IMG/VR virus record: IMGVR_UViG_3300033984_000473 | Span: 1-64,000 of that record | Reading direction: 5' to 3' (one strand) | DNA length: 64,000 bases | Part shown: in pieces, positions 25,080-43,666 of the stretch | Layout: every line of letters starts with the position of its first letter | Numbering within the stretch: the first letter of the stretch is position 1 | Program-made: the position numbers and the translations under genes | Notes under the pieces: generated by a model | The model's input: the letters and a program-made list of their open reading frames with translations, nothing else | Database searches by the model: none | What the model was told of the DNA's origin: nothing

Positions 25080-26921
25080 TTATCTTAATTCGTTGATATC
25101 AAATGTTGGAATACCATCAACTCTTACGTGACCGTAGAATCTGTTATTAACAACTTTTTTAGCGTAACGTGTCATAATACCTTTAACTGGAGCAAAGTTG
25201 AATGGGTTGTACATTGTTGGAGTTAATTGTAATGGAACGTATGGTGCATAGATATAACCAGTATCAAGTAATGATTTACCTTTGTGTCCGATGATTACTG
25301 AGTAAGGTGGAGCATAAGGGTCACGGTACACTTGGTAACGTCCGCTTAATGAACCGATTCTTTCAATACCCATGTTGTATTGGTCTTGCTCTGGGTTAGC
25401 ATCACTTACGTGGAAGTATTCTAAATCATCAAAAATAGCTGAGATTTCAGAAGAAACTACGATAAAGTTAGCACCACCTCTAAGAGTAGATTTGTGTATT
25501 TGAGCAGAAACTTGGTTTAATCTAGTGATTAAAGTTTGGTTCCAGTCTTTTTGAGTATATGGACTTGCAGCAGAAGAAGCTTTTCTCCAACCATTGTAAT
25601 CCCATCTCAATTGCCATGCAGCAGCTTTACGGATATCTCTAAGGATTTCACGGTCAATCTCAGCAGCAACTTGTTCAGATAACATAGCTGTTAATTCAGC
25701 TTCTGCATCAATGTTGTGGAATGCACTAACGTCTTGAGCAAGCTCTGGAGACCAAGTAGCACGTAATTTTCTTTCTTCAACAGCAACAACAACTTCGTCT
25801 AATTTGAAAGATACTTCTCCCATTTCAGTTTCAAGCTCTAATGTTGCGTATTCAGCCCATGCAGATGCAAATGTGAACGCTGTTACAGTAGTTGCAGAAG
25901 CACCAACATAACCATCATAAGTTGCAGTACCAGCACCACCAGCACCATTAGCTGTTGTTCCTACTGGGTGACGTAAGTCTAATTCTAAGTAAAGTGTACC
26001 AGTACCATCAGTCAATGCTTTTGAACCAGAAACAATTCCTTTACCATATTGTTGAGTAACTAATCTGAAAGGGATTTCTTTACCAGCAGCGATAATTGTG
26101 TTACCGTCACGGTCTAAGATACCTGTTACAGCAGAGTTAATAACGTGTAATGAAGCTAAGAATGACTCAGTATCCATGTTGTTACCATCAGCACCTGTCA
26201 TAACTTCTCTACCACCAGTTGTTACACCAGCAGAGAAACCAGAAATTCCTAAGATAATACCTCTTAATGAACCGTCAGTTGCAGTAGGTCCAGCAGACAT
26301 ACTTCCTGTAGCGATAGTGTAGTTACCATCAACTCCTAAAGTGAAAACAGCGTTAACACCAGGTTGGATAGTAAGAGTACCTTTAGAGTTATCAAATAAA
26401 CCATCATTGTAGAATGCATCGTAAAGATTTTTTCCAGCGAATGAAGTTACTGCACAATTAGCTTGGTTGATACAAGATGGAACACCACCGTTCATAGCTG
26501 TGTGAGCAGAGTAAGTAGTACCGTAAGCACCGTTACCACCATTAGCAGCGTAGTCAGAACCTGGTAAACCAGCAGCGTCAACACGTTGAGATGTAACTGG
26601 AACGAAGAAGAACAATTTACCGATTGGCATGTTCATAGCTTGTACAGATACGATATCATTAGCTAATAATTTAGAGAATACTCTACGTACAATTGGGAAT
26701 ACAACTGTTTCGAAAGAACCAGAAGAGTTAGTAGTAGTGTTTTCAGTTAATAATGTAGACGCTTGGTTTTCATATAACTGAGCGATGTTTTCTTTAACGT
26801 GTCCTTTTAGACCGTCTAGGAATCCTAATGAATCCCATTTAGATTGTGTTTCTTTACGGATAGCCTTCATGTGGTTTAATCCGATATTTCCAACCTGTCC
26901 AGATGTTAATAAATGTGACAT
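25080..26921 (-). CDS. Major capsid protein (T4 gp23-like) with a large Gly/Thr/Ala-rich insertion
   Basis: LYENQ, LLTE cleavage site, FPIVRRVF, VSVQAM..PIG, RKLRATWSPELAQD, IDAEAEL, YAPYVPL, GIMTRY. Confidence 0.96.
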   Translation of the reverse strand: MSHLLTSGQVGNIGLNHMKAIRKETQSKWDSLGFLDGLKGHVKENIAQLYENQASTLLTENTTTNSSGSFETVVFPIVRRVFSKLLANDIVSVQAMNMPIGKLFFFVPVTSQRVDAAGLPGSDYAANGGNGAYGTTYSAHTAMNGGVPSCINQANCAVTSFAGKNLYDAFYNDGLFDNSKGTLTIQPGVNAVFTLGVDGNYTIATGSMSAGPTATDGSLRGIILGISGFSAGVTTGGREVMTGADGNNMDTESFLASLHVINSAVTGILDRDGNTIIAAGKEIPFRLVTQQYGKGIVSGSKALTDGTGTLYLELDLRHPVGTTANGAGGAGTATYDGYVGASATTVTAFTFASAWAEYATLELETEMGEVSFKLDEVVVAVEERKLRATWSPELAQDVSAFHNIDAEAELTAMLSEQVAAEIDREILRDIRKAAAWQLRWDYNGWRKASSAASPYTQKDWNQTLITRLNQVSAQIHKSTLRGGANFIVVSSEISAIFDDLEYFHVSDANPEQDQYNMGIERIGSLSGRYQVYRDPYAPPYSVIIGHKGKSLLDTGYIYAPYVPLQLTPTMYNPFNFAPVKGIMTRYAKKVVNNRFYGHVRVDGIPTFDINELR

Positions 26922-28301: not shown

Positions 28302-29027
28302 CTATTCAGATAAAAATTTATCTAAATTATTTAATAGGTTTTCTTTTAATATTGGTTTTTTAATTTCTACGTTTTCAACATATGGTGCCATTTCTTCTCT
28401 ACTTCTTCCAATCCACGCATCTGGTGTAGATGGTGCTGTAACAACATCCCAACAAATAATCTCGAAATCGTCTTGAACAATTTGCTCACCGTTTTTACCT
28501 TCTTTAAGTGAACCAACACCTCTAGAAGATACACCTATCTTAATTCTATTTCTTAGTAAGTTAGCAACTTCATCACCTTTGGTTGATACGATACCATAGT
28601 TAATAAAACCAGGTGTCATTAAGATTTCCATCTTACCCATAAGTGTATGACCTTCCCACCATGTTTCAACAATGTTGTGTGATATTCTATCACCAGCAAT
28701 AATTGAAGACTCTGGGTGGTCTAATTCACCAACAGCTCTACGTTCACGTATTGCTTCTTGATATAGTCTGTCTTGATGTTTAAGGATAGCTTCTGGATAG
28801 ATTCTACCATTACGATTAAGTATACCGTATTTCTGTAATACCACGTAAACTATAAGTGGTTCAACTATTGCTAGTTTCCCACCAGTATCTAGTTTTTTAA
28901 TTTCATTAATGAATGGTTGATTTCTAGGCTCTTCTGGAGATATATAACCAGCATCATGCTCGATTAATCCACCCCAACCGCTTTCACCACGTTTTAATAC
29001 TCTAAAGTCTTTATAATTTATGTCCAT
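28302..29027 (-). CDS. Prohead protease (T4 gp21-like)
   Basis: NRNGRIYP, GELDHP, SH, GVSSRGVGSL, DVVTAPSTPDA. Confidence 0.95.
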   Translation of the reverse strand: MDINYKDFRVLKRGESGWGGLIEHDAGYISPEEPRNQPFINEIKKLDTGGKLAIVEPLIVYVVLQKYGILNRNGRIYPEAILKHQDRLYQEAIRERRAVGELDHPESSIIAGDRISHNIVETWWEGHTLMGKMEILMTPGFINYGIVSTKGDEVANLLRNRIKIGVSSRGVGSLKEGKNGEQIVQDDFEIICWDVVTAPSTPDAWIGRSREEMAPYVENVEIKKPILKENLLNNLDKFLSE

Positions 29028-31019: not shown

Positions 31020-33050
31020 TTATTCTTCCAACATTTTGTCAATACCACTAATCATGTCATCGATGTTTTCATTTATCTTAACATTCTTATCGTAAATCTT
31101 AACTTTTTCCTCTTTGTTTGTTTCAGTCGGTTTCACTGATTCTATTAGCAAATCAACAAATCTACCCTCGTATTTTTTATTTCTAGCATTAAGTTTTTCA
31201 CTCAAAATACTTTTTTCTTCTTTAAGTAATTTTTTTAATTTATTTACGGATTCAGCTACAGTTTCTGGGGCTTCTTCAGTTGCCGCAGCACCTTCTTCAC
31301 CACCAGCTTCAGTTGCCGCTGCACCTTCTTCACCTTCAGCACCACCTTCAGTGTCACCAAAGTCTAAATCTTCACCAGCACCGCCACCGCCACCGAATGA
31401 ACCACCTAGACCACCGCCACCACCAGCGGCACCATCTTCACCTTCTTCACCACCAGCAGCACCACCACCAGTTAATGCAAGTTGATAATCACCATAGATT
31501 CTATCTACAACATCAAACATACCAGTATGTTTAATAACATTACCAGAATTAGCCAATTCAGCTGAAGCGGCTTTTTCCATTCTTTGCTCAAGTAAATCTT
31601 GTTTGATTTCATCATCAGACCATCCTAGGATATCTCTATGTGCTTTAGTCATCGACATAGCACCAAATCCATTACCAGCATCGGCCACAGCATCTTTATA
31701 AAGAGTAATCTTCAATTGTAAATGCTCAATTTTAAGCATTTCAGCCTGTGTAGATGGGTTGTTAAGTGTAAGTGTAAAATTATCTAAGTCTTCTTCAAAA
31801 CCTAGAATGTATAAATGTATAATCGCAATCTTATTAAGCTCTTGAAGCATAGATTGTTGGATACGGTTGATTGTTCTAGAGAAACGAATATCTTGTAGAG
31901 CTAAGTTTTTACCCTCACCTGTAGCTTCCTCAAAACCTAAGAAAGGCTTAGGAACACGCAATGCTGTGAATAAATTTCTTTGTAAGTATTCAATATCTGC
32001 AATCTGGTCCAAGTTTTCAGCACCAGGCAATGTATCAATAGGGTTAGGTGCACCTTCAGTTCTCATAGGGATAAAGAAATCTTGGTCATTGGCCAATTGG
32101 TTATAACGTAAATCGATTTGACCAGTTTGTGGGTCAGTAATTGGCATACGTTTAAATCTGTCAGCAATTTGGTTTACGTAAGCTTCAACATCGGCATCAT
32201 CAATATTACCAACATAGATTTTATATACTCTACGTTCTGGAGCTCTAGTAACACGGTAAACAAGCATTGAATCCTCAGAAAGGATAAGTTGTTTCCAAAT
32301 ACGTCTTGCTTTCTCTAAAACTGATGTTCCGTAAGGTAAACGTCTATCATCACCTAGAAGTCTAAAGTGAGCAATTTGCCATGAATTGAATTCAACATCA
32401 CGACCTCTCCAGAAGAATTTTACTTTATCTGTACTACTAACTTCTTCGTTAGGTAATTCTCTACCAGAAATCATATCAAACAATCCACTTTCTCTACGTT
32501 CCATTTCATAGTTAGGCATTTGTTTACCACCTAACACACCATGAGTATCATCTATATTCAAATAAACAAAGTTATCACCGTATTTACATGTATTTCTAGT
32601 CCACATCGGTAATGATGTGTGCAAATCAAGTCTATTGAAGAATAAATCTTCTAGGATACCTTTTACACGTTTACTATCAGAATAGATATTCATTACCCTA
32701 CCGTTATCATTTACTGTTGTAGATTCTTCCATCATTACGTCTAATGCAGCCGCAATTGTTGGGTAAAACTCCATAGCTTCGAAATCGGAATAAGAACCGA
32801 TACGAGTTGTTTCATAGTTGATTGATTGTTGGAACAATCCACTCTCAACTTTTTTCCAAGTATTTCCTAATAACTTGTTTTGTTGTGCTTGTAACTTTGC
32901 TGCGTCAAACTCAGCTTTGTCAGTAGTTCTAAGTAATTCACCTTTACCCAAGTTGTAACGTTGAGTTGGTTGTTTTTGAGTATGCTTAACAGCATCTGGA
33001 CTAATTACTTGACCTAATCTTTGAAATAATGTTAAATTTTTATTTGCCAT
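31020..33050 (-). CDS. Portal protein (T4 gp20-like) with a Gly/Glu/Ala-rich C-terminal extension
   Basis: YGTSVLEKARRIWKQL…YRVTRAPERRVYKIYVGN, DFFIP, IDTLPG, ALRVP, DIRFSRTINRIQ. Confidence 0.95.
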   Translation of the reverse strand: MANKNLTLFQRLGQVISPDAVKHTQKQPTQRYNLGKGELLRTTDKAEFDAAKLQAQQNKLLGNTWKKVESGLFQQSINYETTRIGSYSDFEAMEFYPTIAAALDVMMEESTTVNDNGRVMNIYSDSKRVKGILEDLFFNRLDLHTSLPMWTRNTCKYGDNFVYLNIDDTHGVLGGKQMPNYEMERRESGLFDMISGRELPNEEVSSTDKVKFFWRGRDVEFNSWQIAHFRLLGDDRRLPYGTSVLEKARRIWKQLILSEDSMLVYRVTRAPERRVYKIYVGNIDDADVEAYVNQIADRFKRMPITDPQTGQIDLRYNQLANDQDFFIPMRTEGAPNPIDTLPGAENLDQIADIEYLQRNLFTALRVPKPFLGFEEATGEGKNLALQDIRFSRTINRIQQSMLQELNKIAIIHLYILGFEEDLDNFTLTLNNPSTQAEMLKIEHLQLKITLYKDAVADAGNGFGAMSMTKAHRDILGWSDDEIKQDLLEQRMEKAASAELANSGNVIKHTGMFDVVDRIYGDYQLALTGGGAAGGEEGEDGAAGGGGGLGGSFGGGGGAGEDLDFGDTEGGAEGEEGAAATEAGGEEGAAATEEAPETVAESVNKLKKLLKEEKSILSEKLNARNKKYEGRFVDLLIESVKPTETNKEEKVKIYDKNVKINENIDDMISGIDKMLEE
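31275..31333 (-). repeat. Imperfect tandem repeat encoding GEEGAAATE twice in the portal tail
   Basis: TTCAGTTGCCGC(A/T)GCACCTTCTTCACC occurs twice. Confidence 0.75.
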
Positions 33051-33354: not shown

Positions 33355-35133
33355 TTATCTTTGTTTATTCATCCCACCAAATAACCACATATATTCACCT
33401 CTAGGGTCTTGAACATTTTTGTATGCGACATGTTGTGGGTTTATTTTAGTTACTTCTTTACCAGTAACTGTATCTACTGATGTTGTAGTCGCTGGCCCTT
33501 GTGCTGAATTAGCACTAGATAACCAACTATTCAACATAGCTTTGTTTTGTTTTTCAAGTCTTTCTAATTTTTTGAAAGCGTGCTCGATTACCCATAAAGC
33601 CATACCCATAGCCATAAGTAAATCATCATGGTAACCTTCCATGTGGTCTGGTCTACCATTTTTGTAAATAAATGTTTTCATTTCAGATACCATTCTAGAA
33701 GAACGAATCTTAACCCCGTTGGTTCTAATTTGATATTCTAAATTTGAAATCATAGGTAAACGTACCGAAGTAGCGTGGAACCCTGGAATTTTATTGTCTT
33801 TATCGTAAGATGTTAATTCTCTTTGTCTAGCCGAAAGTATCTTACCATTAGCATTATCATAGTGAAGTAATTTGTAATCAAATTCTAGTAATTTTAAAAC
33901 TGTAGAAACACCCATACCACCAGTCACATCGACTACTGTATAAGCTTTATATAATTCACCGTATTCTTCTACGATTTGAGCTAGTAAATCTGGTTGTATC
34001 TTACCTTGATACTCCATAACCTGTTCCATCGTTGTAAAGTCTAATATAATGATTGTAGAAGCATCTTCACCATCACCCCTAGATACATCGACACCCATGA
34101 TATATTGGTGGTCTTCTCTAGGTTGGTCCCAAATCCAAATCTCACCTTCAGCACCATAGGTTAATAATGGTTTCATTACGTTTGTCTTTTCTTGGAAAGC
34201 TATGTGTTCTTCATTGATTACGTTACCACCAGACCCAATAAAGGATACATCAAGCTCTTGTGCAATCATCTTGGCATCGTTGTTCATACCTAAACACATT
34301 TCTTCATACCATGATGAAGTCGGTTTCCAACCATCATCAAGTCTTCTATTGTATGAATCAAATGTAAATTCAGTTTCTACTTCTAATTCATCACCCTTGA
34401 ACCATCGTAAGTCTTTGTTGTAACGTAAATCTTCATACCATTTCATTTCAACGATATTGAAGTTGTTTTTACCATTCTTAGCTTGGTCATATGTTTTGTA
34501 GTACAAAGCATCCATACCTTTAGGAGTTGAAATAAGCGTTGCTTTTCCCCCAGTACCTAAAGCAGTAAGAGCAGCACCAAATACTTCGGCACCGTTATCG
34601 ATATAGGCAGCCTCATCCATGATAAGGTAAGTCGGTGTAAATCCACGCAAGGCATCTTTAGATGTTGCAACCGCTTTAACACGGCTACCATTAGGAAGTC
34701 TAATCTCTTTCTTAGAATCGGTAATAAAAATTGATTTAGCTTCGTTCTTAGCGTTACCGTAATATTCGTCACCCCAAATCCATCTAGGTAGTTGAGATAA
34801 GAAATCTTTAATCTTAGCTAAGAACTCAAAAGCAAGTTCTTGTTTATTCGCAATAATTAGAATGTTTTCTGGATTGTCAGCATCGGCCCAGCCGACCTTG
34901 ATTGACATATAAGCAGCAGTTGTAGTTGATACACCAGCCTGTCTAGGTTTAGTTACTAGATTAAATCTGTGTTTTTCGTAAGCGAGAATAATTTCCTTTT
35001 GTCTAGGAAATAACTTAAAGGGTACAAAACCCTCTTGCGTTTTATCAAATGTTTCCAAATACGTTTCAATAGCGTAAGATGGGTTCATCAGACATTTCGT
35101 ATATTCTTTAAATATTTCGTGTGTCGTTAGCAT
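33355..35133 (-). CDS. Terminase large subunit (T4 gp17-like)
   Basis: KPRQAGVSTT Walker A, LIMDEAA Walker B, ISTP, GVDVSRG nuclease motif, HDDL; ATG 35133 follows CATATTTATA. Confidence 0.95.
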   Translation of the reverse strand: MLTTHEIFKEYTKCLMNPSYAIETYLETFDKTQEGFVPFKLFPRQKEIILAYEKHRFNLVTKPRQAGVSTTTAAYMSIKVGWADADNPENILIIANKQELAFEFLAKIKDFLSQLPRWIWGDEYYGNAKNEAKSIFITDSKKEIRLPNGSRVKAVATSKDALRGFTPTYLIMDEAAYIDNGAEVFGAALTALGTGGKATLISTPKGMDALYYKTYDQAKNGKNNFNIVEMKWYEDLRYNKDLRWFKGDELEVETEFTFDSYNRRLDDGWKPTSSWYEEMCLGMNNDAKMIAQELDVSFIGSGGNVINEEHIAFQEKTNVMKPLLTYGAEGEIWIWDQPREDHQYIMGVDVSRGDGEDASTIIILDFTTMEQVMEYQGKIQPDLLAQIVEEYGELYKAYTVVDVTGGMGVSTVLKLLEFDYKLLHYDNANGKILSARQRELTSYDKDNKIPGFHATSVRLPMISNLEYQIRTNGVKIRSSRMVSEMKTFIYKNGRPDHMEGYHDDLLMAMGMALWVIEHAFKKLERLEKQNKAMLNSWLSSANSAQGPATTTSVDTVTGKEVTKINPQHVAYKNVQDPRGEYMWLFGGMNKQR

Positions 35134-35145
35134 ATTCTTTTTAGT

Positions 35146-35155
35146 TATAAATATG
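35146..35155 (-). promoter_or_regulatory. Putative late promoter CATATTTATA
   Basis: 12 nt upstream of the terminase ATG. Confidence 0.6.
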
Positions 35156-35186
35156 CTAAAATATAGTAAAATCAATAATACCAAAT

Positions 35187-37575: not shown

Positions 37576-37972
37576 GTTTTTTTATATTATAATTAAGTAT
37601 TAGGTCTTTTTCGTATAACTTTTCTTCTACTTCCTCTATCGGTAAACCAAAGTGGAAATGAAGTCTTTTTTCTGGGTAAGCATCATAAGCATTTATATTT
37701 TCCCATGCTAACGGAAGTACACCATCAACAGAATCCCATACAGCAAACTCTGAACTTTCTTGAATTAAATCTAATTTTAATTCTGATTCAAGTCTACCAA
37801 CATTTTTAATAAAATTGTCGTGGGGAGCCTCTGGTCGCCCAGCAGCTGGGTATGTATCCCATTCCTCACCATCAATATTTTCAGTTGTATCTGAAAAGAT
37901 AAATTCATACACATAGTTTCCTTTGTAATCTTTACCTATTTTATTGACATATATTAAAAATAAATCTTTCAT
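37562..37972 (-). CDS. Hypothetical acidic protein
   Basis: 136-aa ORF in operon. Confidence 0.7.
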   Translation of the reverse strand: MKDLFLIYVNKIGKDYKGNYVYEFIFSDTTENIDGEEWDTYPAAGRPEAPHDNFIKNVGRLESELKLDLIQESSEFAVWDSVDGVLPLAWENINAYDAYPEKRLHFHFGLPIEEVEEKLYEKDLILNYNIKKHEQK

Positions 37973-39723
37973 TAGTTAACATACATATTTAATTCATAAG
38001 TTCCACTATCCATACGGTATATCTGAATATGTAACTCTTTTCGTTGTAATTTACCGTCAACGGTTAATTCTTTATTATATCGTTGTGTTTGCCCATAAGC
38101 AACATGTTGTGGGTCAGATAATTCAAATTGAATTGGGTCATAACCTCTTTTTGTAGTATAAACTTCAGCTTCGTTAAAACAACTAGCAAGTGTTTTATGG
38201 TAAGTTTCAAAATCGAATTTACCTTCTTTTAATGCTTTAGGGGCTGGTTGAACAGCTGGTTGAACCGTAAAAGGTTTATTTCTTCTACTAGGTTGTACAG
38301 GTGTTTCAACTGGTTTGGTTGTTGGTTTAGTTACTGGCTGTGGAGCAATAGCTGGTTCTGAATTTGTCATATCATTTTGATTAAAACTTTCTTGTAATTT
38401 TAAAGTTAAATAACTTTTATCAAAGATACTAATTTTTTTTGGATTAATCAAGTTTTCAGCCACCATTTTTGATACAGGTGTGTTAGACCACATTTTACAT
38501 GACCAATATTTTGGCGTAGTTCTATCTTTAGCTTGGGCACAGTTATGTCTTGCTCTAAAAGATTTTTTTCTTTCTGGGTTATCTCTTTTGATTTCCATGT
38601 TTGCGTCACCAAAATTAACCTTTACAACTTTACCTTTTTTATTTTTAACATAAACCTTAAACTTTTTATTTTTAACATCACCAGAACTTGGTTTACCCAA
38701 TGTAACAGTTTTACCTTCATACTCTGCTTCGTTTAAATTAACATTTTCAACACTACCATATTCATCTTGGTAACCACCTTCAGTTTCACCATCATAGTCC
38801 ATGGAATCATCTTCAATGTTAGATTCAAAGAAGTGATATACTTCTTCTATATCATCAGCAGAACTAGCAACATGGTCAACAGCCCATGCATGCCCATTGG
38901 CACACATTTCATCGATTTGTTGTTGATTCATTTCTAATAACTCACCAGCAGCGTGATGTATAGTTTTAAGGTTTTGCCAGAACATATAGTTCAAAGACTC
39001 ACCACCTTGATGGTTTTCGTTAACTGGTACGCAGTTAGGAACTTCTTTCCCACCTTTTTCTTTCATACCAACTTGTTTATACCCTTTCCAACATGGTTTA
39101 ATCTCATCTAACCTGTTTTCTTCCATGAATTCTTCGCTACCTTCTGGTGCGAATATACTCATTCTTTTACCGTGACCAGGAAGTATGAAATTTTCGTTTT
39201 CATAGATAGTGTATTCTTCAAGGTCTTCAGAATCATCTTCAGTACCAAAACCACTGTCACCACTATCGCTGTCATTGGTTCCATCATTATTATCCTCTCC
39301 ACTATCGGTATCATCTTGAGTACCCATATCAGAATCTTTCGAATCATCGTTTCCAGCTGTATTAACTTTTTTAATTATATCTTTTTTGTCTTCTTCATCC
39401 ATCTCAGAAGTGTGAGTTGCAGACAATAAAGAATTGATAGCAAACTTCTCTAATTCGAAATCTGGCTGACCTTGTTCTTCGTTGTATTTTCTTAAGGATT
39501 GTCCTAACTTTCCAGTTAGTTGTTCAATGTATTTTTTTGGGTCTGTTTCTTCATCAGCCGCAACACCAGCATCAAACGGTTCGTCATCAAATGGCTTATC
39601 ATCAGCTGCGGGAGCAGCATCAGTTGTATCAGCACCAGTGTCGCCAAAACCAGAAGTTTCAGTATCGGCAGCAACAGGTTGAGCTGGAGCGGCTACTGCT
39701 GGGGTAGCAGTAGCCATCTTCAA
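37972..39723 (-). CDS. Modular acidic internal-head-type protein; probably the C-terminal part of a -1 frameshift fusion with 39744-40562
   Basis: Modules PCWKGY…VPNCVP, YMFWQNL…, KFKVYVKN…SFRARHNC…YWSC, Pro-rich, separated by x-x-E sites; frame stays open upstream to the A10 run at 39762-39771. Confidence 0.7.
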   Translation of the reverse strand: MKMATATPAVAAPAQPVAADTETSGFGDTGADTTDAAPAADDKPFDDEPFDAGVAADEETDPKKYIEQLTGKLGQSLRKYNEEQGQPDFELEKFAINSLLSATHTSEMDEEDKKDIIKKVNTAGNDDSKDSDMGTQDDTDSGEDNNDGTNDSDSGDSGFGTEDDSEDLEEYTIYENENFILPGHGKRMSIFAPEGSEEFMEENRLDEIKPCWKGYKQVGMKEKGGKEVPNCVPVNENHQGGESLNYMFWQNLKTIHHAAGELLEMNQQQIDEMCANGHAWAVDHVASSADDIEEVYHFFESNIEDDSMDYDGETEGGYQDEYGSVENVNLNEAEYEGKTVTLGKPSSGDVKNKKFKVYVKNKKGKVVKVNFGDANMEIKRDNPERKKSFRARHNCAQAKDRTTPKYWSCKMWSNTPVSKMVAENLINPKKISIFDKSYLTLKLQESFNQNDMTNSEPAIAPQPVTKPTTKPVETPVQPSRRNKPFTVQPAVQPAPKALKEGKFDFETYHKTLASCFNEAEVYTTKRGYDPIQFELSDPQHVAYGQTQRYNKELTVDGKLQRKELHIQIYRMDSGTYELNMYVN

Positions 39724-39743
39724 CTTATATTTTGTTTCTTCGT

Positions 39744-40562
39744 TTACTTTAGAGTGTATACTTTTTTTTTTAAAGTCCCTTCAGTTAAACTATCAATGAT
39801 TGAATCCATGTTTTCCATAGCTCTAATTATTGAAAGTTTATGAGATTCTTTGATAGCTCCGTCTTTTGGGTCTTTATCAGCACCATTTGGAACACCATCA
39901 CCATCATCATCAATACCTAATTTCTCTTTGTCGTTTCCAGTATATTTTCCTGGGTTTTTAATCATTTCATCTATAGCTTGTTCAGCTTCAGTTAAATCTT
40001 CTTCTTTATTTTTTTTTATTCTATAATCAGCATCGTTATCTTCATCTTCTTCCTCTTTATCATAATCTTTTTCATCTTCTGGATTTGGACCATCTTCCCA
40101 TTCAAATAATGGTGTATTGTGTTCCATGTTTCCTTCATTAGAAAATCCATTACCACCATATTGTGAGAACCCAGCAACATTTTCAGTTAATAGGTTATCA
40201 TTTTTGAATACGTTGATGTCACCACCTTGTCCGTAAGCTTCAGCCAAAGATTTAAAATTAAGATTTAAGTGCTTGATTGCTTTAGCATATGAGCCATAAG
40301 CTTCTGATTTTTTGTTTTGTAAACCACCGATGTATTTAAAGTCTTCAGCTAAAATGCTAGAAACTTTATTTGTTACTTTGATATAGTATTCGTGGTTTTC
40401 TCTTACGATAGCATAAGATTTACCGTCTGGACCAACTTTTGTTAATTCCACAACAGAATTTGAATGATTTTCATTGATAGAAGAAATACCCATCAATTCT
40501 TTCATACGCTCATTAATTTCGTTACCTTTTAGGCCAACAGGGTTTATTTTATTGTTTTTCAT
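39744..40562 (-). CDS. Putative prohead core/internal protein (N-terminal part of possible frameshift fusion)
   Basis: RMKELMG, INEN, LLTEN, IKES; ends …LKKKVYTLK* over TTT-A10. Confidence 0.72.
   Translation of the reverse strand: MKNNKINPVGLKGNEINERMKELMGISSINENHSNSVVELTKVGPDGKSYAIVRENHEYYIKVTNKVSSILAEDFKYIGGLQNKKSEAYGSYAKAIKHLNLNFKSLAEAYGQGGDINVFKNDNLLTENVAGFSQYGGNGFSNEGNMEHNTPLFEWEDGPNPEDEKDYDKEEEDEDNDADYRIKKNKEEDLTEAEQAIDEMIKNPGKYTGNDKEKLGIDDDGDGVPNGADKDPKDGAIKESHKLSIIRAMENMDSIIDSLTEGTLKKKVYTLK
39762..39774 (-). other. Slippery site T TTA AAA AAA AAA (candidate -1 frameshift or transcriptional slippage)
   Basis: The -1 frame opens two codons before this site and the 0 frame closes five codons after it. 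Confidence 0.6.
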
Positions 40563-41386: not shown

Positions 41387-43666
41387 CTAATTGCTTAAAG
41401 GTGCCTTGATTGTAGCGTGCGATTGATAATCCTCTAATTGAAAATCTTCTACCTGTACATCTCTGTATGACTTATCACTTTCATGACCACAATTTTTAGC
41501 CCAAAATTCGGTGTTAATTCTTACGCTTGGCAAAGGAAAAGGCTCTCTTGTTCTTGTCGGTATTTCCCTAGTTTTTAATTTAGCATCCATCCAGTGGTCA
41601 TCGTTTGCTACCATTCCAGGTGCGTACTCATCATAATACATTTTAATCCTTTCTTCTCTGTTGTATTCTACCCCAATTTGTTCTTTAGCAGCATCCAAAT
41701 GGTTTGAATACAAATGAACATCACCCAAGTTCCCAATCAATTGGTCTGGAATCATATTGGCTTCTTCGGCTAATATCATCAACAACAATCCATAAGAGGC
41801 AATGTTGAATGGTAACCCTAAGAATGTATCTACACTTCGTTGATTCCACATTAAAGAGATTGCTCTTCGAGGTATGTTTTCAATATCCAGATATTCGTGT
41901 TTATGTGTAATTGCAAAAATAAGGTGAGATACTTTTAGTCCATCAGATTCACGTTTCTTAATTACTAGGTAGTTCTGTCTTTCTTCCAAACTCAACTCTC
42001 TTGTATAAACTTGAAATCCATAATGACAATTATGGTTAACCAAATTAAAAACATTATAAGTATGGTTATTTTCTGTTGAAATATTATATACATATCCATT
42101 ATAATTAGTTTTTTCAATATCTTTAACAAGTAACCATAAATAATCATTATCAAAAATATAATTTTTTGATTTATTTTTTTGTTGGTAAACATTTATTGAA
42201 TAAGTATTTTTTTGATTAACTTCACGACCTTCTATAATTTTTTTATTAGGTCTTTTTTGATAATATACTGACGCTTTTATATTTAATTTAGCGTATAATA
42301 ATTGTAATCCGTAGGCTATATTATCAGATACCGTAGTATAACTAATACCATCTTTAGTAATACAACCATCAGCCCTTTGATAACCTTTAATAAATTCTTC
42401 GATTAAATGCTTAGGTCCGTTATGTATAAATTGTGGTATCATTTTACCATCTGCGTATTTTCCAAACTCAGTTAATATTTTAAATAATTGCTGCTTTCTT
42501 CCAACATATTTTTTACAATTTACTCCAGAATTATTTAATCTAGCAAGACCAATAATATTTGTTAATCTAGGTAATACTTCTTCTATTTGGTTGTCATTAA
42601 TAGTAAAATAAATTTCTTTTTTAGAATTAATTAACCAACCATCACCTAAAAAATAACCCATTAAATACCAATAATCTTTATCATCTAATTTTGTAGATAT
42701 TAATTTTTCAGAATATTGGTTATCTTCGATAATAGTCTCAAATGTTGGTATAATCTCTTCTTTATTTATAGGCATACCTATATAGTCATTCTTAGTTATT
42801 TCATCGGCATTTATATAACCTTTATCTTTCACTAAAAATGGGTGATTTGGTGTTACACCAATAAATTTAGAGTTTCCATAAACCCTTATATGTAATAAAT
42901 CATTATTATATTTTGTTTCATGTAATTCATAAACCTTTTGGTAAGACCCATCTTCTGTTAATACTAAATCATTAATGGTTATTTCAGATATTTTTCGATA
43001 CCCATCAATACACGCAACTAACATATCTGAACTAAAACAAGGTGGAAGAACCATTTGGTCCAGCTCTCCAACATTCCAAGCATTAACCATTAATCGTCTT
43101 GAGTCTGGATTTGTTTTAAGGTCGTTGATTAGATTTTGGATTTGGTCTATTTGACCTTCCAATACATATTGACTAACAGGTATCTTTCCCTCTTCTTTTA
43201 TTCTTTTCAAAACTCGTTTACCACCACAGCTTCTCCATTGTTTACCATAAATAGGGCCTAATTCACCCCACTTCTTAGCAAACTCATCATCTGTTTTGAT
43301 TCTTCTAATAAATTCATCATTATCTGCAACTCTTTCTGTTCCATCATCTAACCGAATACCAGCAACATTGCCTTTATTAAATTCGTTACAATACTTCTTA
43401 TAAGCATCACCATCCCAAATATGACAATTAGCATCAACCAACGGTTTAATATTTGTTTCCCCTCGTAAGAACCATAATAGTTCTGTTACGATTGTTTTCC
43501 ATGGCATCTTCTTCGTAGTAAGTAAAGGAAAACCATCTTTCATATCGTGACGTATTTGTCTTCCAAATACGCTAATGGTCCCAGTCCCAGTACGGTCTTT
43601 CTTTTCTACTCCATTATCTAAGATATCATGAAGTAAGTCTGTATATTGTTTGTCTAATTTATTCAT
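41387..43666 (-). CDS. thyA: Thymidylate synthase interrupted by an intein
   Basis: [44 protein letters not shown]|C…N|[28 protein letters not shown]. Confidence 0.96.
42029..43039 (-). mobile_element. Intein (337 aa) with LAGLIDADG homing endonuclease, inserted just before the catalytic Cys of ThyA
   Basis: Block A CFSSDMLV, block [17 protein letters not shown] and [10 protein letters not shown], block [12 protein letters not shown], block G NHN followed by +1 Cys. Confidence 0.95.

Follow-up and report, generated by a model that had tools for sequence, protein, structure and literature searches.

We identified a run of ten A's (A10) between two neighbouring genes of an uncultured freshwater T4-like giant phage that is kept in almost 80 relatives and almost certainly lets part of the gene's expression slip into the -1 frame, yielding a short 272-aa protein and a long 863-aa protein that carries a string of small modules. 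The site lies in a 64,000-nt stretch (the window; positions 1 to 64,000 of IMG/VR record IMGVR_UViG_3300033984_000473) of a 232,931-nt genome. We infer from sequence comparison, rather than from direct RNA or protein evidence, that this is programmed recoding producing a fusion of the two open reading frames (ORF1 and ORF2), for which transcriptional slippage with insertion of one A is the more likely mechanism, although a -1 ribosomal shift is not excluded. The features of the locus are summarized in the table below.

Coordinates (window positions), strand and supporting observations for the recoding locus and for the predicted prohead protease gene
Coordinates	Strand	Feature	Description	Support
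39744-40562	-	ORF1 (P0001, 272 aa), zero-frame short product	Conserved N-terminal domain (about residues 1-125), variable acidic middle, conserved C-terminal helix LSIxRAMxxMDxIIDxL followed by KKK	Homologs in 93 IMG/VR stretches
39762-39771	-	A10 run, shift site (T10 on the + strand)	Encodes KKK in both frames; 3' end at a zero-frame codon boundary	Across 78 junctions: A10 in 67, A9 in 9, A11 in 2
39744-39783	-	Recoding window	-1-frame stop TGA at 39781-39783; both frames open only in the 37-nt stretch 39744-39780; zero-frame stop TAA at 39744-39746	In relatives the -1 frame opens from 2 nt inside the run to 36 nt before it, and the zero frame stops 1-24 nt after the run
39718-39762	-	Bridge, read only in the -1 frame	Reads S I H S K V N E E T K Y K L K; VNE at 39739-39747; KYKLK at 39718-39732; lies upstream of the only ATG	Motif in 76 of 78 junctions; codon-position entropy 0.56/0.42/1.05 bits
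37972-39717	-	ORF2 (P0002, 581 aa from ATG 39717)	String of five small folded modules (predicted) separated by disordered acidic or Pro/Ala-rich linkers; universally conserved core at residues about 40-122	Modules 190-410 also occur as stand-alone small ORFs in other aquatic phages
37972-40562	-	Predicted trans-frame product (863 aa)	Codons 40562-39762 in frame 0, then 39762-37972 in frame -1; equals an mRNA with A11	Natural in-frame equivalents: L072/L073 (483 aa) and L163 (620 aa)
28302-29027	-	T4 gp21-type prohead protease (Peptidase_S77)	Enzyme proposed to cut at the [LIVM]xE sites	phrog_207, 1.2e-38; PF03420, 88.7 bits against a cut-off of 27

The sequence layout given in a preliminary description of this locus was reproduced in full, and its observation holds. 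On the minus strand the zero frame reads ACT TTA AAA AAA AAA GTA across the run and ends with CTA AAG TAA, such that ORF1 terminates 15 nt after the run. The -1 frame opens only 9 nt before the run and reads FKKKSIHSKVNEETKYKLKM through to the stop at 37972. A TTG at 39723 would give a 583-aa ORF2. A simulated fusion comprises 267 + 596 = 863 aa, as previously estimated. Chance does not explain this arrangement. Of the 25 A/T runs of nine or more in the genome, each of which was examined for a second recoding site, this is the only one that joins a long open frame upstream (270 codons) to a long frame downstream (599 codons).

The layout recurs in 77 other distinct junctions from IMG/VR and in one MAG contig (L162), and 77 of 78 distinct relatives' gene-pair junctions have ORF2 in the -1 frame with an A9-A11 run in the overlap. 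The run is 9-11 A's in all 78 junctions and in L162, and is never shorter than nine. The overlap of the two frames is tiny in every relative (13-64 nt), and in several it shrinks to 13 nt, which is the run itself. The A9 and A11 variants arise by substitution at the 5' edge of the run and keep the -1 relation, and no in-frame run variant was seen in 78 junctions. Two lineages, represented by L072/L073 and by L163, encode the ORF1 N-domain and the ORF2 core as one in-frame ORF without any run.

The bridge beyond the ORF1 stop is coding in the -1 frame. The peptide [LIVM]xE-TKYKLKL (K[YF]x[LI]K in its conserved part) lies downstream of the ORF1 stop in 76 of 78 junctions and varies mainly at third codon positions, at which entropy is about twice that of positions 1 and 2. 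In 60 of 76 junctions there is no ATG, GTG or TTG between the -1 stop and this motif, and the window's ATG at 39717 is replaced by Leu, Ile or Val codons in most relatives. Selection also acts on the nucleotides themselves. All three Lys codons at the junction are AAA in 78 of 78 (log10 P about -18.7 from codon usage, treating the 78 related junctions as independent), against 17% AAG elsewhere in these genes. In contrast, other KKK tripeptides in the same genes are broken by AAG in 49 of 52 cases, so that unbroken A9 encodes KKK in only 3 of 52, against an expected 57% or so, although the window's genome does contain at least two A9 runs inside ORFs.

The A10 state of the DNA is not an assembly error. 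A10 appears in 67 independent assemblies, and searches of assembled (Logan) sequencing contigs recovered it without indel in two DNA runs (one of them probably the window's own source sample, the other an independent freshwater run), in one RNA library and in a further metagenome contig. The RNA-library contig (X19, 205 nt), the only one over the site, shows A10 as the major species. Since contigs drop minority variants and the library may contain DNA, this neither supports nor excludes slippage.

We looked for elements that could stimulate a ribosomal shift. The +1 to +40 stretch folds at -1.5 kcal/mol in the window, and across 78 junctions no structure lies 5-45 nt downstream of the run (mean MFE -2.5 kcal/mol, z -0.07), including the canonical 5-9 nt spacing. 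A stable GC-rich region starts about 35 nt downstream (z -2.3) and could conceivably influence ribosomes, although its spacing is non-canonical and variable. A perfect hairpin at 39691-39715 was rejected as a stimulator, since it is 45 nt from the run and lies in a generally self-complementary Pro/Ala-coding stretch. A 5' hairpin abutting the run (Roseiflexus IS630 type) is not conserved. GAAGGG lies upstream of the run in the window, but SD-like tetramers 4-18 nt upstream occur in only 29 of 78 junctions (37%, against a 22% background). No promoter-like or terminator-like site was found between the ORFs.

Searches for homologs of known function gave little information. Megablast of the region and tblastn of ORF1 against cultured phages found nothing, and no cultured relative carries ORF1 or the ORF2 core. 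Pfam and PHROG searches of ORF1, ORF2 and the three genes between ORF2 and the terminase gene returned no informative family; ORF1 had no match, while ORF2 obtained only PHROGs of unknown function and a sub-threshold DUF5754 hit. Structure models of ORF1 (pLDDT 65) and ORF2 (pLDDT 64) matched only uncharacterised proteins in PDB, BFVD and AFDB clusters, and an ESM Atlas feature search returned only hypothetical viral clusters. A scan of genome contigs yielded only a probably mis-binned MAG contig and a Prochlorococcus single-cell contig, which we do not treat as host evidence.

Taken together, we consider the A10 run to be a conserved, programmed recoding site. In this view, most expression ends at the zero-frame stop five codons after the run and gives the ORF1 protein, while a fraction enters the -1 frame and gives the ORF1-ORF2 fusion. 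We favour, with moderate confidence, a shift made mainly by whichever RNA polymerase transcribes this late region: on a homopolymer as long as the RNA:DNA hybrid (9-10 bp), the nascent RNA would realign and one extra A would be inserted, so that ordinary translation of the A11 mRNA reads LKKKSIHSKVNEETKYKLK into ORF2. Bacterial RNA polymerase slips efficiently on runs of nine A/T (Atkins et al., 2016; PMC5009743), which is consistent with the minimum run length, the avoidance of unbroken A9 elsewhere in these genes and the lack of a nearby downstream structure or a conserved SD-like element. However, any A run of nine or more also contains a perfect A_AAA_AAA heptamer in phase, so the sequence alone cannot separate the polymerase from the ribosome, which may contribute. 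The layout and its conservation, the coding character of the bridge, the lack of start codons, the natural in-frame fusions and the A10 state of the DNA are established by our analysis, whereas the polymerase as the slipping machine, synthesis of the fusion protein, the short:long ratio, proteolytic processing and a location in the head are inferred.

The proposed function is likewise an inference. ORF1 would be the constant part and ORF2 a string of exchangeable small modules, which after incorporation into the prohead would be separated by the phage's gp21-type protease at the [LIVM]xE sites, the first of which lies directly after the shift site. T4-type and giant-phage prohead proteases cut after Glu in x-X-E motifs (PMC5694885). 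An [LIVM]xE occurs within 7 aa before KYKLK in 76 of 76 junctions, and similar motifs at most borders of the predicted ORF2 modules (residues 203, 232, 328, 419 and 441) are kept in 72-88% of aligned relatives, and in 62% at residue 496. Since ORF1 and ORF2 match no known head, scaffold or internal-protein family, and three unannotated genes separate them from the terminase gene, the virion and protease part of this model rests on motifs and context only.

The preliminary interpretation, a programmed -1 shift on the A run fusing the 272-aa ORF to the long ORF, is supported by these data. The two outcomes named beforehand as refuting it, reads showing A11 or homologs lacking the slippery site, were both tested and neither occurred: the DNA contigs show A10, and all 77 other frameshifted junctions keep an A9-A11 run in a minimal overlap window. 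Its remark that the bridge contains a VNE site like the other linkers also holds, while its alternative of independent initiation at ATG 39717 is not the conserved route. Two caveats apply, in that the shift may happen in the RNA polymerase rather than in the ribosome, and that its reading of a head core protein with cargo is still an inference.

The best surviving alternative is that the same fusion protein is made by -1 programmed ribosomal frameshifting, with two tRNA-Lys slipping back on A_AAA_AAA while the mRNA stays A10. We regard this as possible, though less likely. The heptamer lies in the zero-frame phase within a narrow, conserved overlap, the 3' end of the run is at a codon boundary in 72 of 78 junctions, the RNA-library contig shows A10, SD-like tetramers are somewhat commoner than background, and -1 shifts are the classical route in phage genes (PMC5009743). 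Against it, no junction has a run shorter than nine although seven would be enough for a ribosome, no stimulatory structure lies at the canonical spacing, the SD-like element is not conserved, and the avoidance of unbroken A9 elsewhere fits slippage proneness that depends on run length. It is very unlikely that there is no recoding and that ORF2 is translated on its own, from ATG 39717, a non-canonical start or by reinitiation, with the run merely encoding a Lys-rich C-terminus. An ATG does follow the ORF1 stop by 26 nt in the window, and 19 of 76 relatives have an ATG somewhere before the end of the motif, but this ATG is not conserved, the conserved -1-frame peptide begins at the run, upstream of any start, and the start-codon counts, invariant AAA codons, in-frame fusions and absence of a promoter-like site argue against it. 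An artefact (a true genome with A11 and a single ORF) or a DNA-level A10/A11 polymorphism from replication slippage (phase variation), conceivable because homopolymers are error-prone in sequencing and replication and because A9 and A11 variants exist, is least likely given the A10 assemblies and the constant -1 relation.

A more far-reaching possibility, which we consider doubtful but not excluded, is that a whole clade of uncultured T4-like giant phages uses obligatory transcriptional slippage on a hybrid-length A10 tract to express ORF2, the tract having been introduced into what is still a single ORF in two related lineages (one on a Prochlorococcus single-cell contig). Slippage would then set the ratio between a constant core protein and the same protein carrying exchangeable cargo modules, which the gp21-type protease would cut free inside the head. 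To our knowledge, this would be the first programmed transcriptional slippage in a dsDNA phage morphogenesis gene, and a modular cargo-loading device. Literature searches for a prior description of this site, or of transcriptional slippage in phage capsid genes, found nothing specific, although the literature searched was not exhaustive.

Our findings show that automatic annotation of this widespread freshwater and marine phage group is systematically wrong, since in most relatives ORF2 has no start codon and is either missed or given a false start. The site also provides an unusually clean natural data set for recoding on long A runs, with about 80 diverged copies and internal negative controls from the broken KKK codons and natural in-frame fusions. 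If the processing model is right, it also reveals how these phages load a variable set of small proteins into the head in a fixed proportion; the same small proteins are scattered as orphan ORFs through pelagiphages, cyanophages and roseophages.

Recoding of these general types is already known, and the present case can be compared with several systems. The T4 prohead core and internal proteins (gp22, gp67, gp68, IPI-III and Alt) are processed by gp21 at L/I-x-E, and the ejection or inner-body proteins of giant phages are cut at A/S/G-x-E; our genome likewise has a Peptidase_S77 protease, and the proteins are acidic and disordered with conserved hydrophobic-x-Glu motifs at module borders, but we found no sequence or fold similarity to any of them, and no polyprotein or frameshift is known for the T4 proteins. 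The lambda-like G/GT tail assembly chaperone shift, conserved across dsDNA phages, is similarly a clade-wide -1 shift near the end of a short ORF that gives, as inferred here, a fixed-ratio fusion with the next ORF and is recognisable purely from comparative genomics. However, it involves tail chaperones next to the tape-measure gene, whereas our pair lies upstream of the terminase and portal genes, shares no homology with G/GT and uses a long homopolymer. The -1 ribosomal frameshifts of E. coli dnaX and IS elements on A_AAA_AAG, and that of the phage T7/T3 capsid gene 10A/10B, share a Lys-codon slippery site, conservation among relatives and, if our inference holds, a minor C-terminally extended form of a structural protein, but use 7-nt motifs, usually with a 3' hairpin and/or a 5' SD-like stimulator, neither of which is conserved here, where the predicted extension is also far larger (596 aa). 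A further parallel is dnaX (tau/gamma) of Thermus thermophilus, made by transcriptional slippage on a 9-nt homopolymer, with the Shigella spa13, spa33 and mxiA genes and IS elements with A9+ runs as related cases. There too the homopolymer is as long as the RNA:DNA hybrid, no 3' stimulatory structure is needed, and, as we infer here, two products share an N-terminus in a ratio set by slippage (PMC5009743). Our case is a phage late-region gene pair in which slippage is inferred, and while slippage gives the shorter product in dnaX, here it would give the longer one.

ORF1 (P0001), on the minus strand, ends in the zero frame with the codons ACT TTA AAA AAA AAA GTA TAC ACT CTA AAG TAA, whereas the -1 frame is open from just after a TGA and reads FKKKSIHSKVNEETKYKLKMATATP onwards without a stop to the end of ORF2. 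The first ATG in that frame starts P0002 (581 aa). The two frames are open together for only 37 nt, and joining them on the A10 run gives a predicted product of 267 + 596 = 863 aa. Every element of the preliminary description of this junction proved correct.

The window is the first 64 kb of a 232,931-nt IMG/VR virus record with a GC content of 33%, which CheckV rates as 64% complete. The gene pair lies in a long minus-strand block that also holds genes for the large terminase, a T4-type portal, a Peptidase_S77 gp21-type prohead protease, and a Gp23-family major capsid protein. Upstream is a thymidylate synthase gene (Thymidylat_synt, 6.3e-85) that is interrupted by an intein with a LAGLIDADG homing-endonuclease domain (Intein_splicing and LAGLIDADG_3 hits). 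No promoter-like or terminator-like site lies between ORF1 and ORF2.

Positions of the features discussed in the text
Feature	Sequence	Position	Strand
ORF1 (P0001, 272 aa)	window	39744..40562	minus
A10 run	window	39762-39771	minus
TGA of the -1 frame	window	39781-39783	minus
Open -1 frame	window	39780 to 37972	minus
First ATG of the -1 frame (P0002)	window	39717	minus
Small Cys-containing modules (P0002 residues 190-410)	window	about 38490-39150	
Perfect hairpin 3' of the run	window	39691-39715	minus
Second run (A9) inside ORF1	window	40009-40017	minus
Thymidylate synthase gene with intein	window	41387-43666	minus
Large terminase	window	33355-35184	minus
T4-type portal	window	31020-33050	minus
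Peptidase_S77 gp21-type prohead protease	window	28302-29027	minus
Gp23-family major capsid protein	window	25080-26921	minus
Example of an A10 run directly before an ATG	whole record	177026-177035	minus
In-frame, run-free version of the ORF1-ORF2 protein	L163	5995-7857	
In-frame, run-free version of the ORF1-ORF2 protein	L072	1038-2489	
ORF2 with intein-like insertion (931 aa)	L045	2324-5116	

The genome has 25 A or T runs of 9 or more, of which only this one joins a long open frame upstream (270 codons) to another long frame downstream (599 codons); the rest are intergenic, lie at gene ends, or lie inside a single frame. In the whole record, T runs on the plus strand stop sharply at 10 (12 of T9, nine of T10, and none longer), and several minus-sense A10 runs sit directly before an ATG or just after a stop codon, which may reflect a leader or terminator element. 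A second run, A9, lies inside ORF1 (DYRIKKNKEE region), where a slip would truncate the protein; it is absent from the closest relatives, the IMG/VR loci L001 and L008, and therefore looks lineage-specific. Contigs from the source DNA run, from an independent freshwater DNA run, and from a metatranscriptome library cover the junction run with no indel, and an exact-flank pattern search that allowed A9-A12 found one more metagenome contig, also with A10.

Scans of IMG/VR with both proteins gave 160 loci (L001-L160), which after removal of duplicates represent 78 distinct relatives' gene-pair junctions. In 77 of these 78 relatives the ORF2 homolog is in the -1 frame and an A run sits in the overlap. 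The statistics that follow count 78 frameshifted junctions, namely these 77 plus the window's own. Among them the run is A10 in 67, A9 in nine, and A11 in two, and the A9 and A11 variants differ by a substitution at the 5' edge, so that the frame relation is kept. The -1 frame opens between 2 nt inside the run and 36 nt before it, and the zero frame stops 1-24 nt after it; in five relatives the shared window is 13 nt, which is the run alone. The identity of relatives to the window protein falls to 44% for ORF1 and 35% for ORF2. The same layout, with A9, can also be seen in L162 (PLXT01000052.1), a 103-kb contig in an archaeal MAG labelled Methanobacterium sp. that is probably a mis-binned phage contig.

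Directly after the run the -1 frame reads S-[LI]-x-E or a variant, followed by (E)TKYKLK[LIV]. The K[YF]x[LI]K motif is present in 76 of 78 junctions, where it lies 5-128 nt beyond the ORF1 stop and is always preceded within 7 residues by [LIVM]xE. Per-position entropy is 0.56, 0.42, and 1.05 bits for codon positions 1, 2, and 3, respectively, which is the signature of protein-level selection. In 60 of 76 junctions there is no ATG, GTG, or TTG between the -1-frame stop and the motif, and the Met encoded by the first ATG of the window is Leu, Ile, or Val in most relatives. Independent initiation therefore cannot be the conserved way to express this sequence.

Run-free fusions of the two parts were also found. 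L072 and L073 encode one 483-aa ORF, and L163, a contig in the single-cell assembly of Prochlorococcus sp. AG-409-L21 that may be a phage that infected or was co-sorted with a Prochlorococcus cell, encodes one 620-aa ORF. Each contains the ORF1 N-domain, a KYKLKV or KKVIKV element, and the ORF2 core in one frame, with no long run, which shows that the two parts work as one polypeptide.

Selection also appears to act on the nucleotides themselves. Lys codons elsewhere in the two genes are 83% AAA, whereas the three junction Lys codons are AAA in all 78 junctions (log10 P about -18.7, a value that treats the 78 related junctions as independent and so overstates the significance). Away from the junction, KKK tripeptides in the ORF1 and ORF2 homologs of the IMG/VR loci are broken by an AAG in 49 of 52 cases, and an unbroken A9 occurs in three of 52, where about 57% would be expected, so that unbroken A9 appears to be counter-selected in these genes. 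Long A runs are thus avoided where the frame must be held, and fixed where it must change.

Slippage by RNA polymerase and by the ribosome would give the same protein, and we consider the polymerase somewhat more likely than not to be responsible. The run is never shorter than 9, although a ribosome needs only 7, and bacterial polymerase slips efficiently on runs of 9 A/T, the hybrid being 9-10 bp (PMC5009743). The 5-45 nt after the run are unstructured (mean MFE -2.5 kcal/mol, z -0.07), and no hairpin abuts the run upstream. We counted on the same side that an SD-like element is present in only 37% of junctions, against a 22% background. A structured GC-rich stretch begins about 35 nt downstream (z -2.3), and the next 60 nt are similarly structured, the whole Pro/Ala-coding stretch from +35 to +155 being more structured than shuffles across relatives. 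In the window this region includes a perfect 9-bp hairpin (GGCUACUGC / GCAGUAGCC), extended to 11 pairs in the predicted fold, which overlaps the last base of the first ATG and lies 45 nt 3' of the run. Since both structured stretches encode Pro/Ala-rich linkers, we read this structure as a by-product of the coding sequence. Ribosomal frameshifting is the less favoured but still possible alternative: a perfect A_AAA_AAA heptamer lies in phase, and the RNA-library contig shows A10, although this is weak evidence because contigs hide minority species. The remaining explanations are, taken together, very unlikely.

Neither ORF has a named family, and no cultured phage was found to have ORF1 or the ORF2 core. 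ORF1 comprises a confidently modelled beta-alpha N-domain (residues 35-125), a variable acidic middle, and a C-terminal helix before KKK. ORF2 is predicted to form five small folded modules, at residues 60-120, 205-232, 244-301, 330-410, and 500-581, separated by disordered linkers. Fold searches gave only uncharacterised proteins. Modules differ in number and kind between relatives, whose ORF2 ranges from 262 to 931 aa; the 931-aa ORF2, from the relative L045, has a long insertion starting with C-VPENT inside a 'RCTRIAKxKYDVWPSAYA' module that looks like an intein. Some modules also occur alone. The small Cys-containing modules (CWKGYxQVGMK...VPNCVP, and KFKVYVKN...FRARHxC...YWSCKMW) recur as stand-alone hypothetical ORFs in pelagiphages, cyanophages, roseophages, a 642-kb uncultured phage, and Nitrosopumilaceae spindle-shaped viruses, and one AFDB cluster joins the second of them to a ParB/sulfiredoxin domain.

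Conserved [LIVM]xE motifs sit at the module borders of ORF2: LDE203, VNE232, LNE328, VAE419, and LQE441 are kept in 72-88% of aligned relatives, and LKE496 in 62%. Prohead proteases of the T4 and giant-phage type cut after Glu in such motifs (PMC5694885; for T4 background, PMC9958956), and this genome has one. From this we infer a polyprotein that would be taken into the prohead and cut into modules, with the first cut directly after the shift site. This remains a hypothesis, which we hold only tentatively, at best about as likely as not.

The finding is real. The interpretation first offered, a programmed -1 shift on the A run that fuses the two ORFs, was supported: of the two results named beforehand as capable of refuting it and examined here, A11 was not seen in the contigs that cover the run, and loss of the slippery run was not the pattern among relatives, 77 of 78 of which retain it. 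What the analysis establishes is the junction and its conservation, whereas the choice between polymerase and ribosome and the function of the products are inferred from sequence alone. Recoding of this kind is already known from other systems; what is new here is the site itself, which is unusually well conserved.
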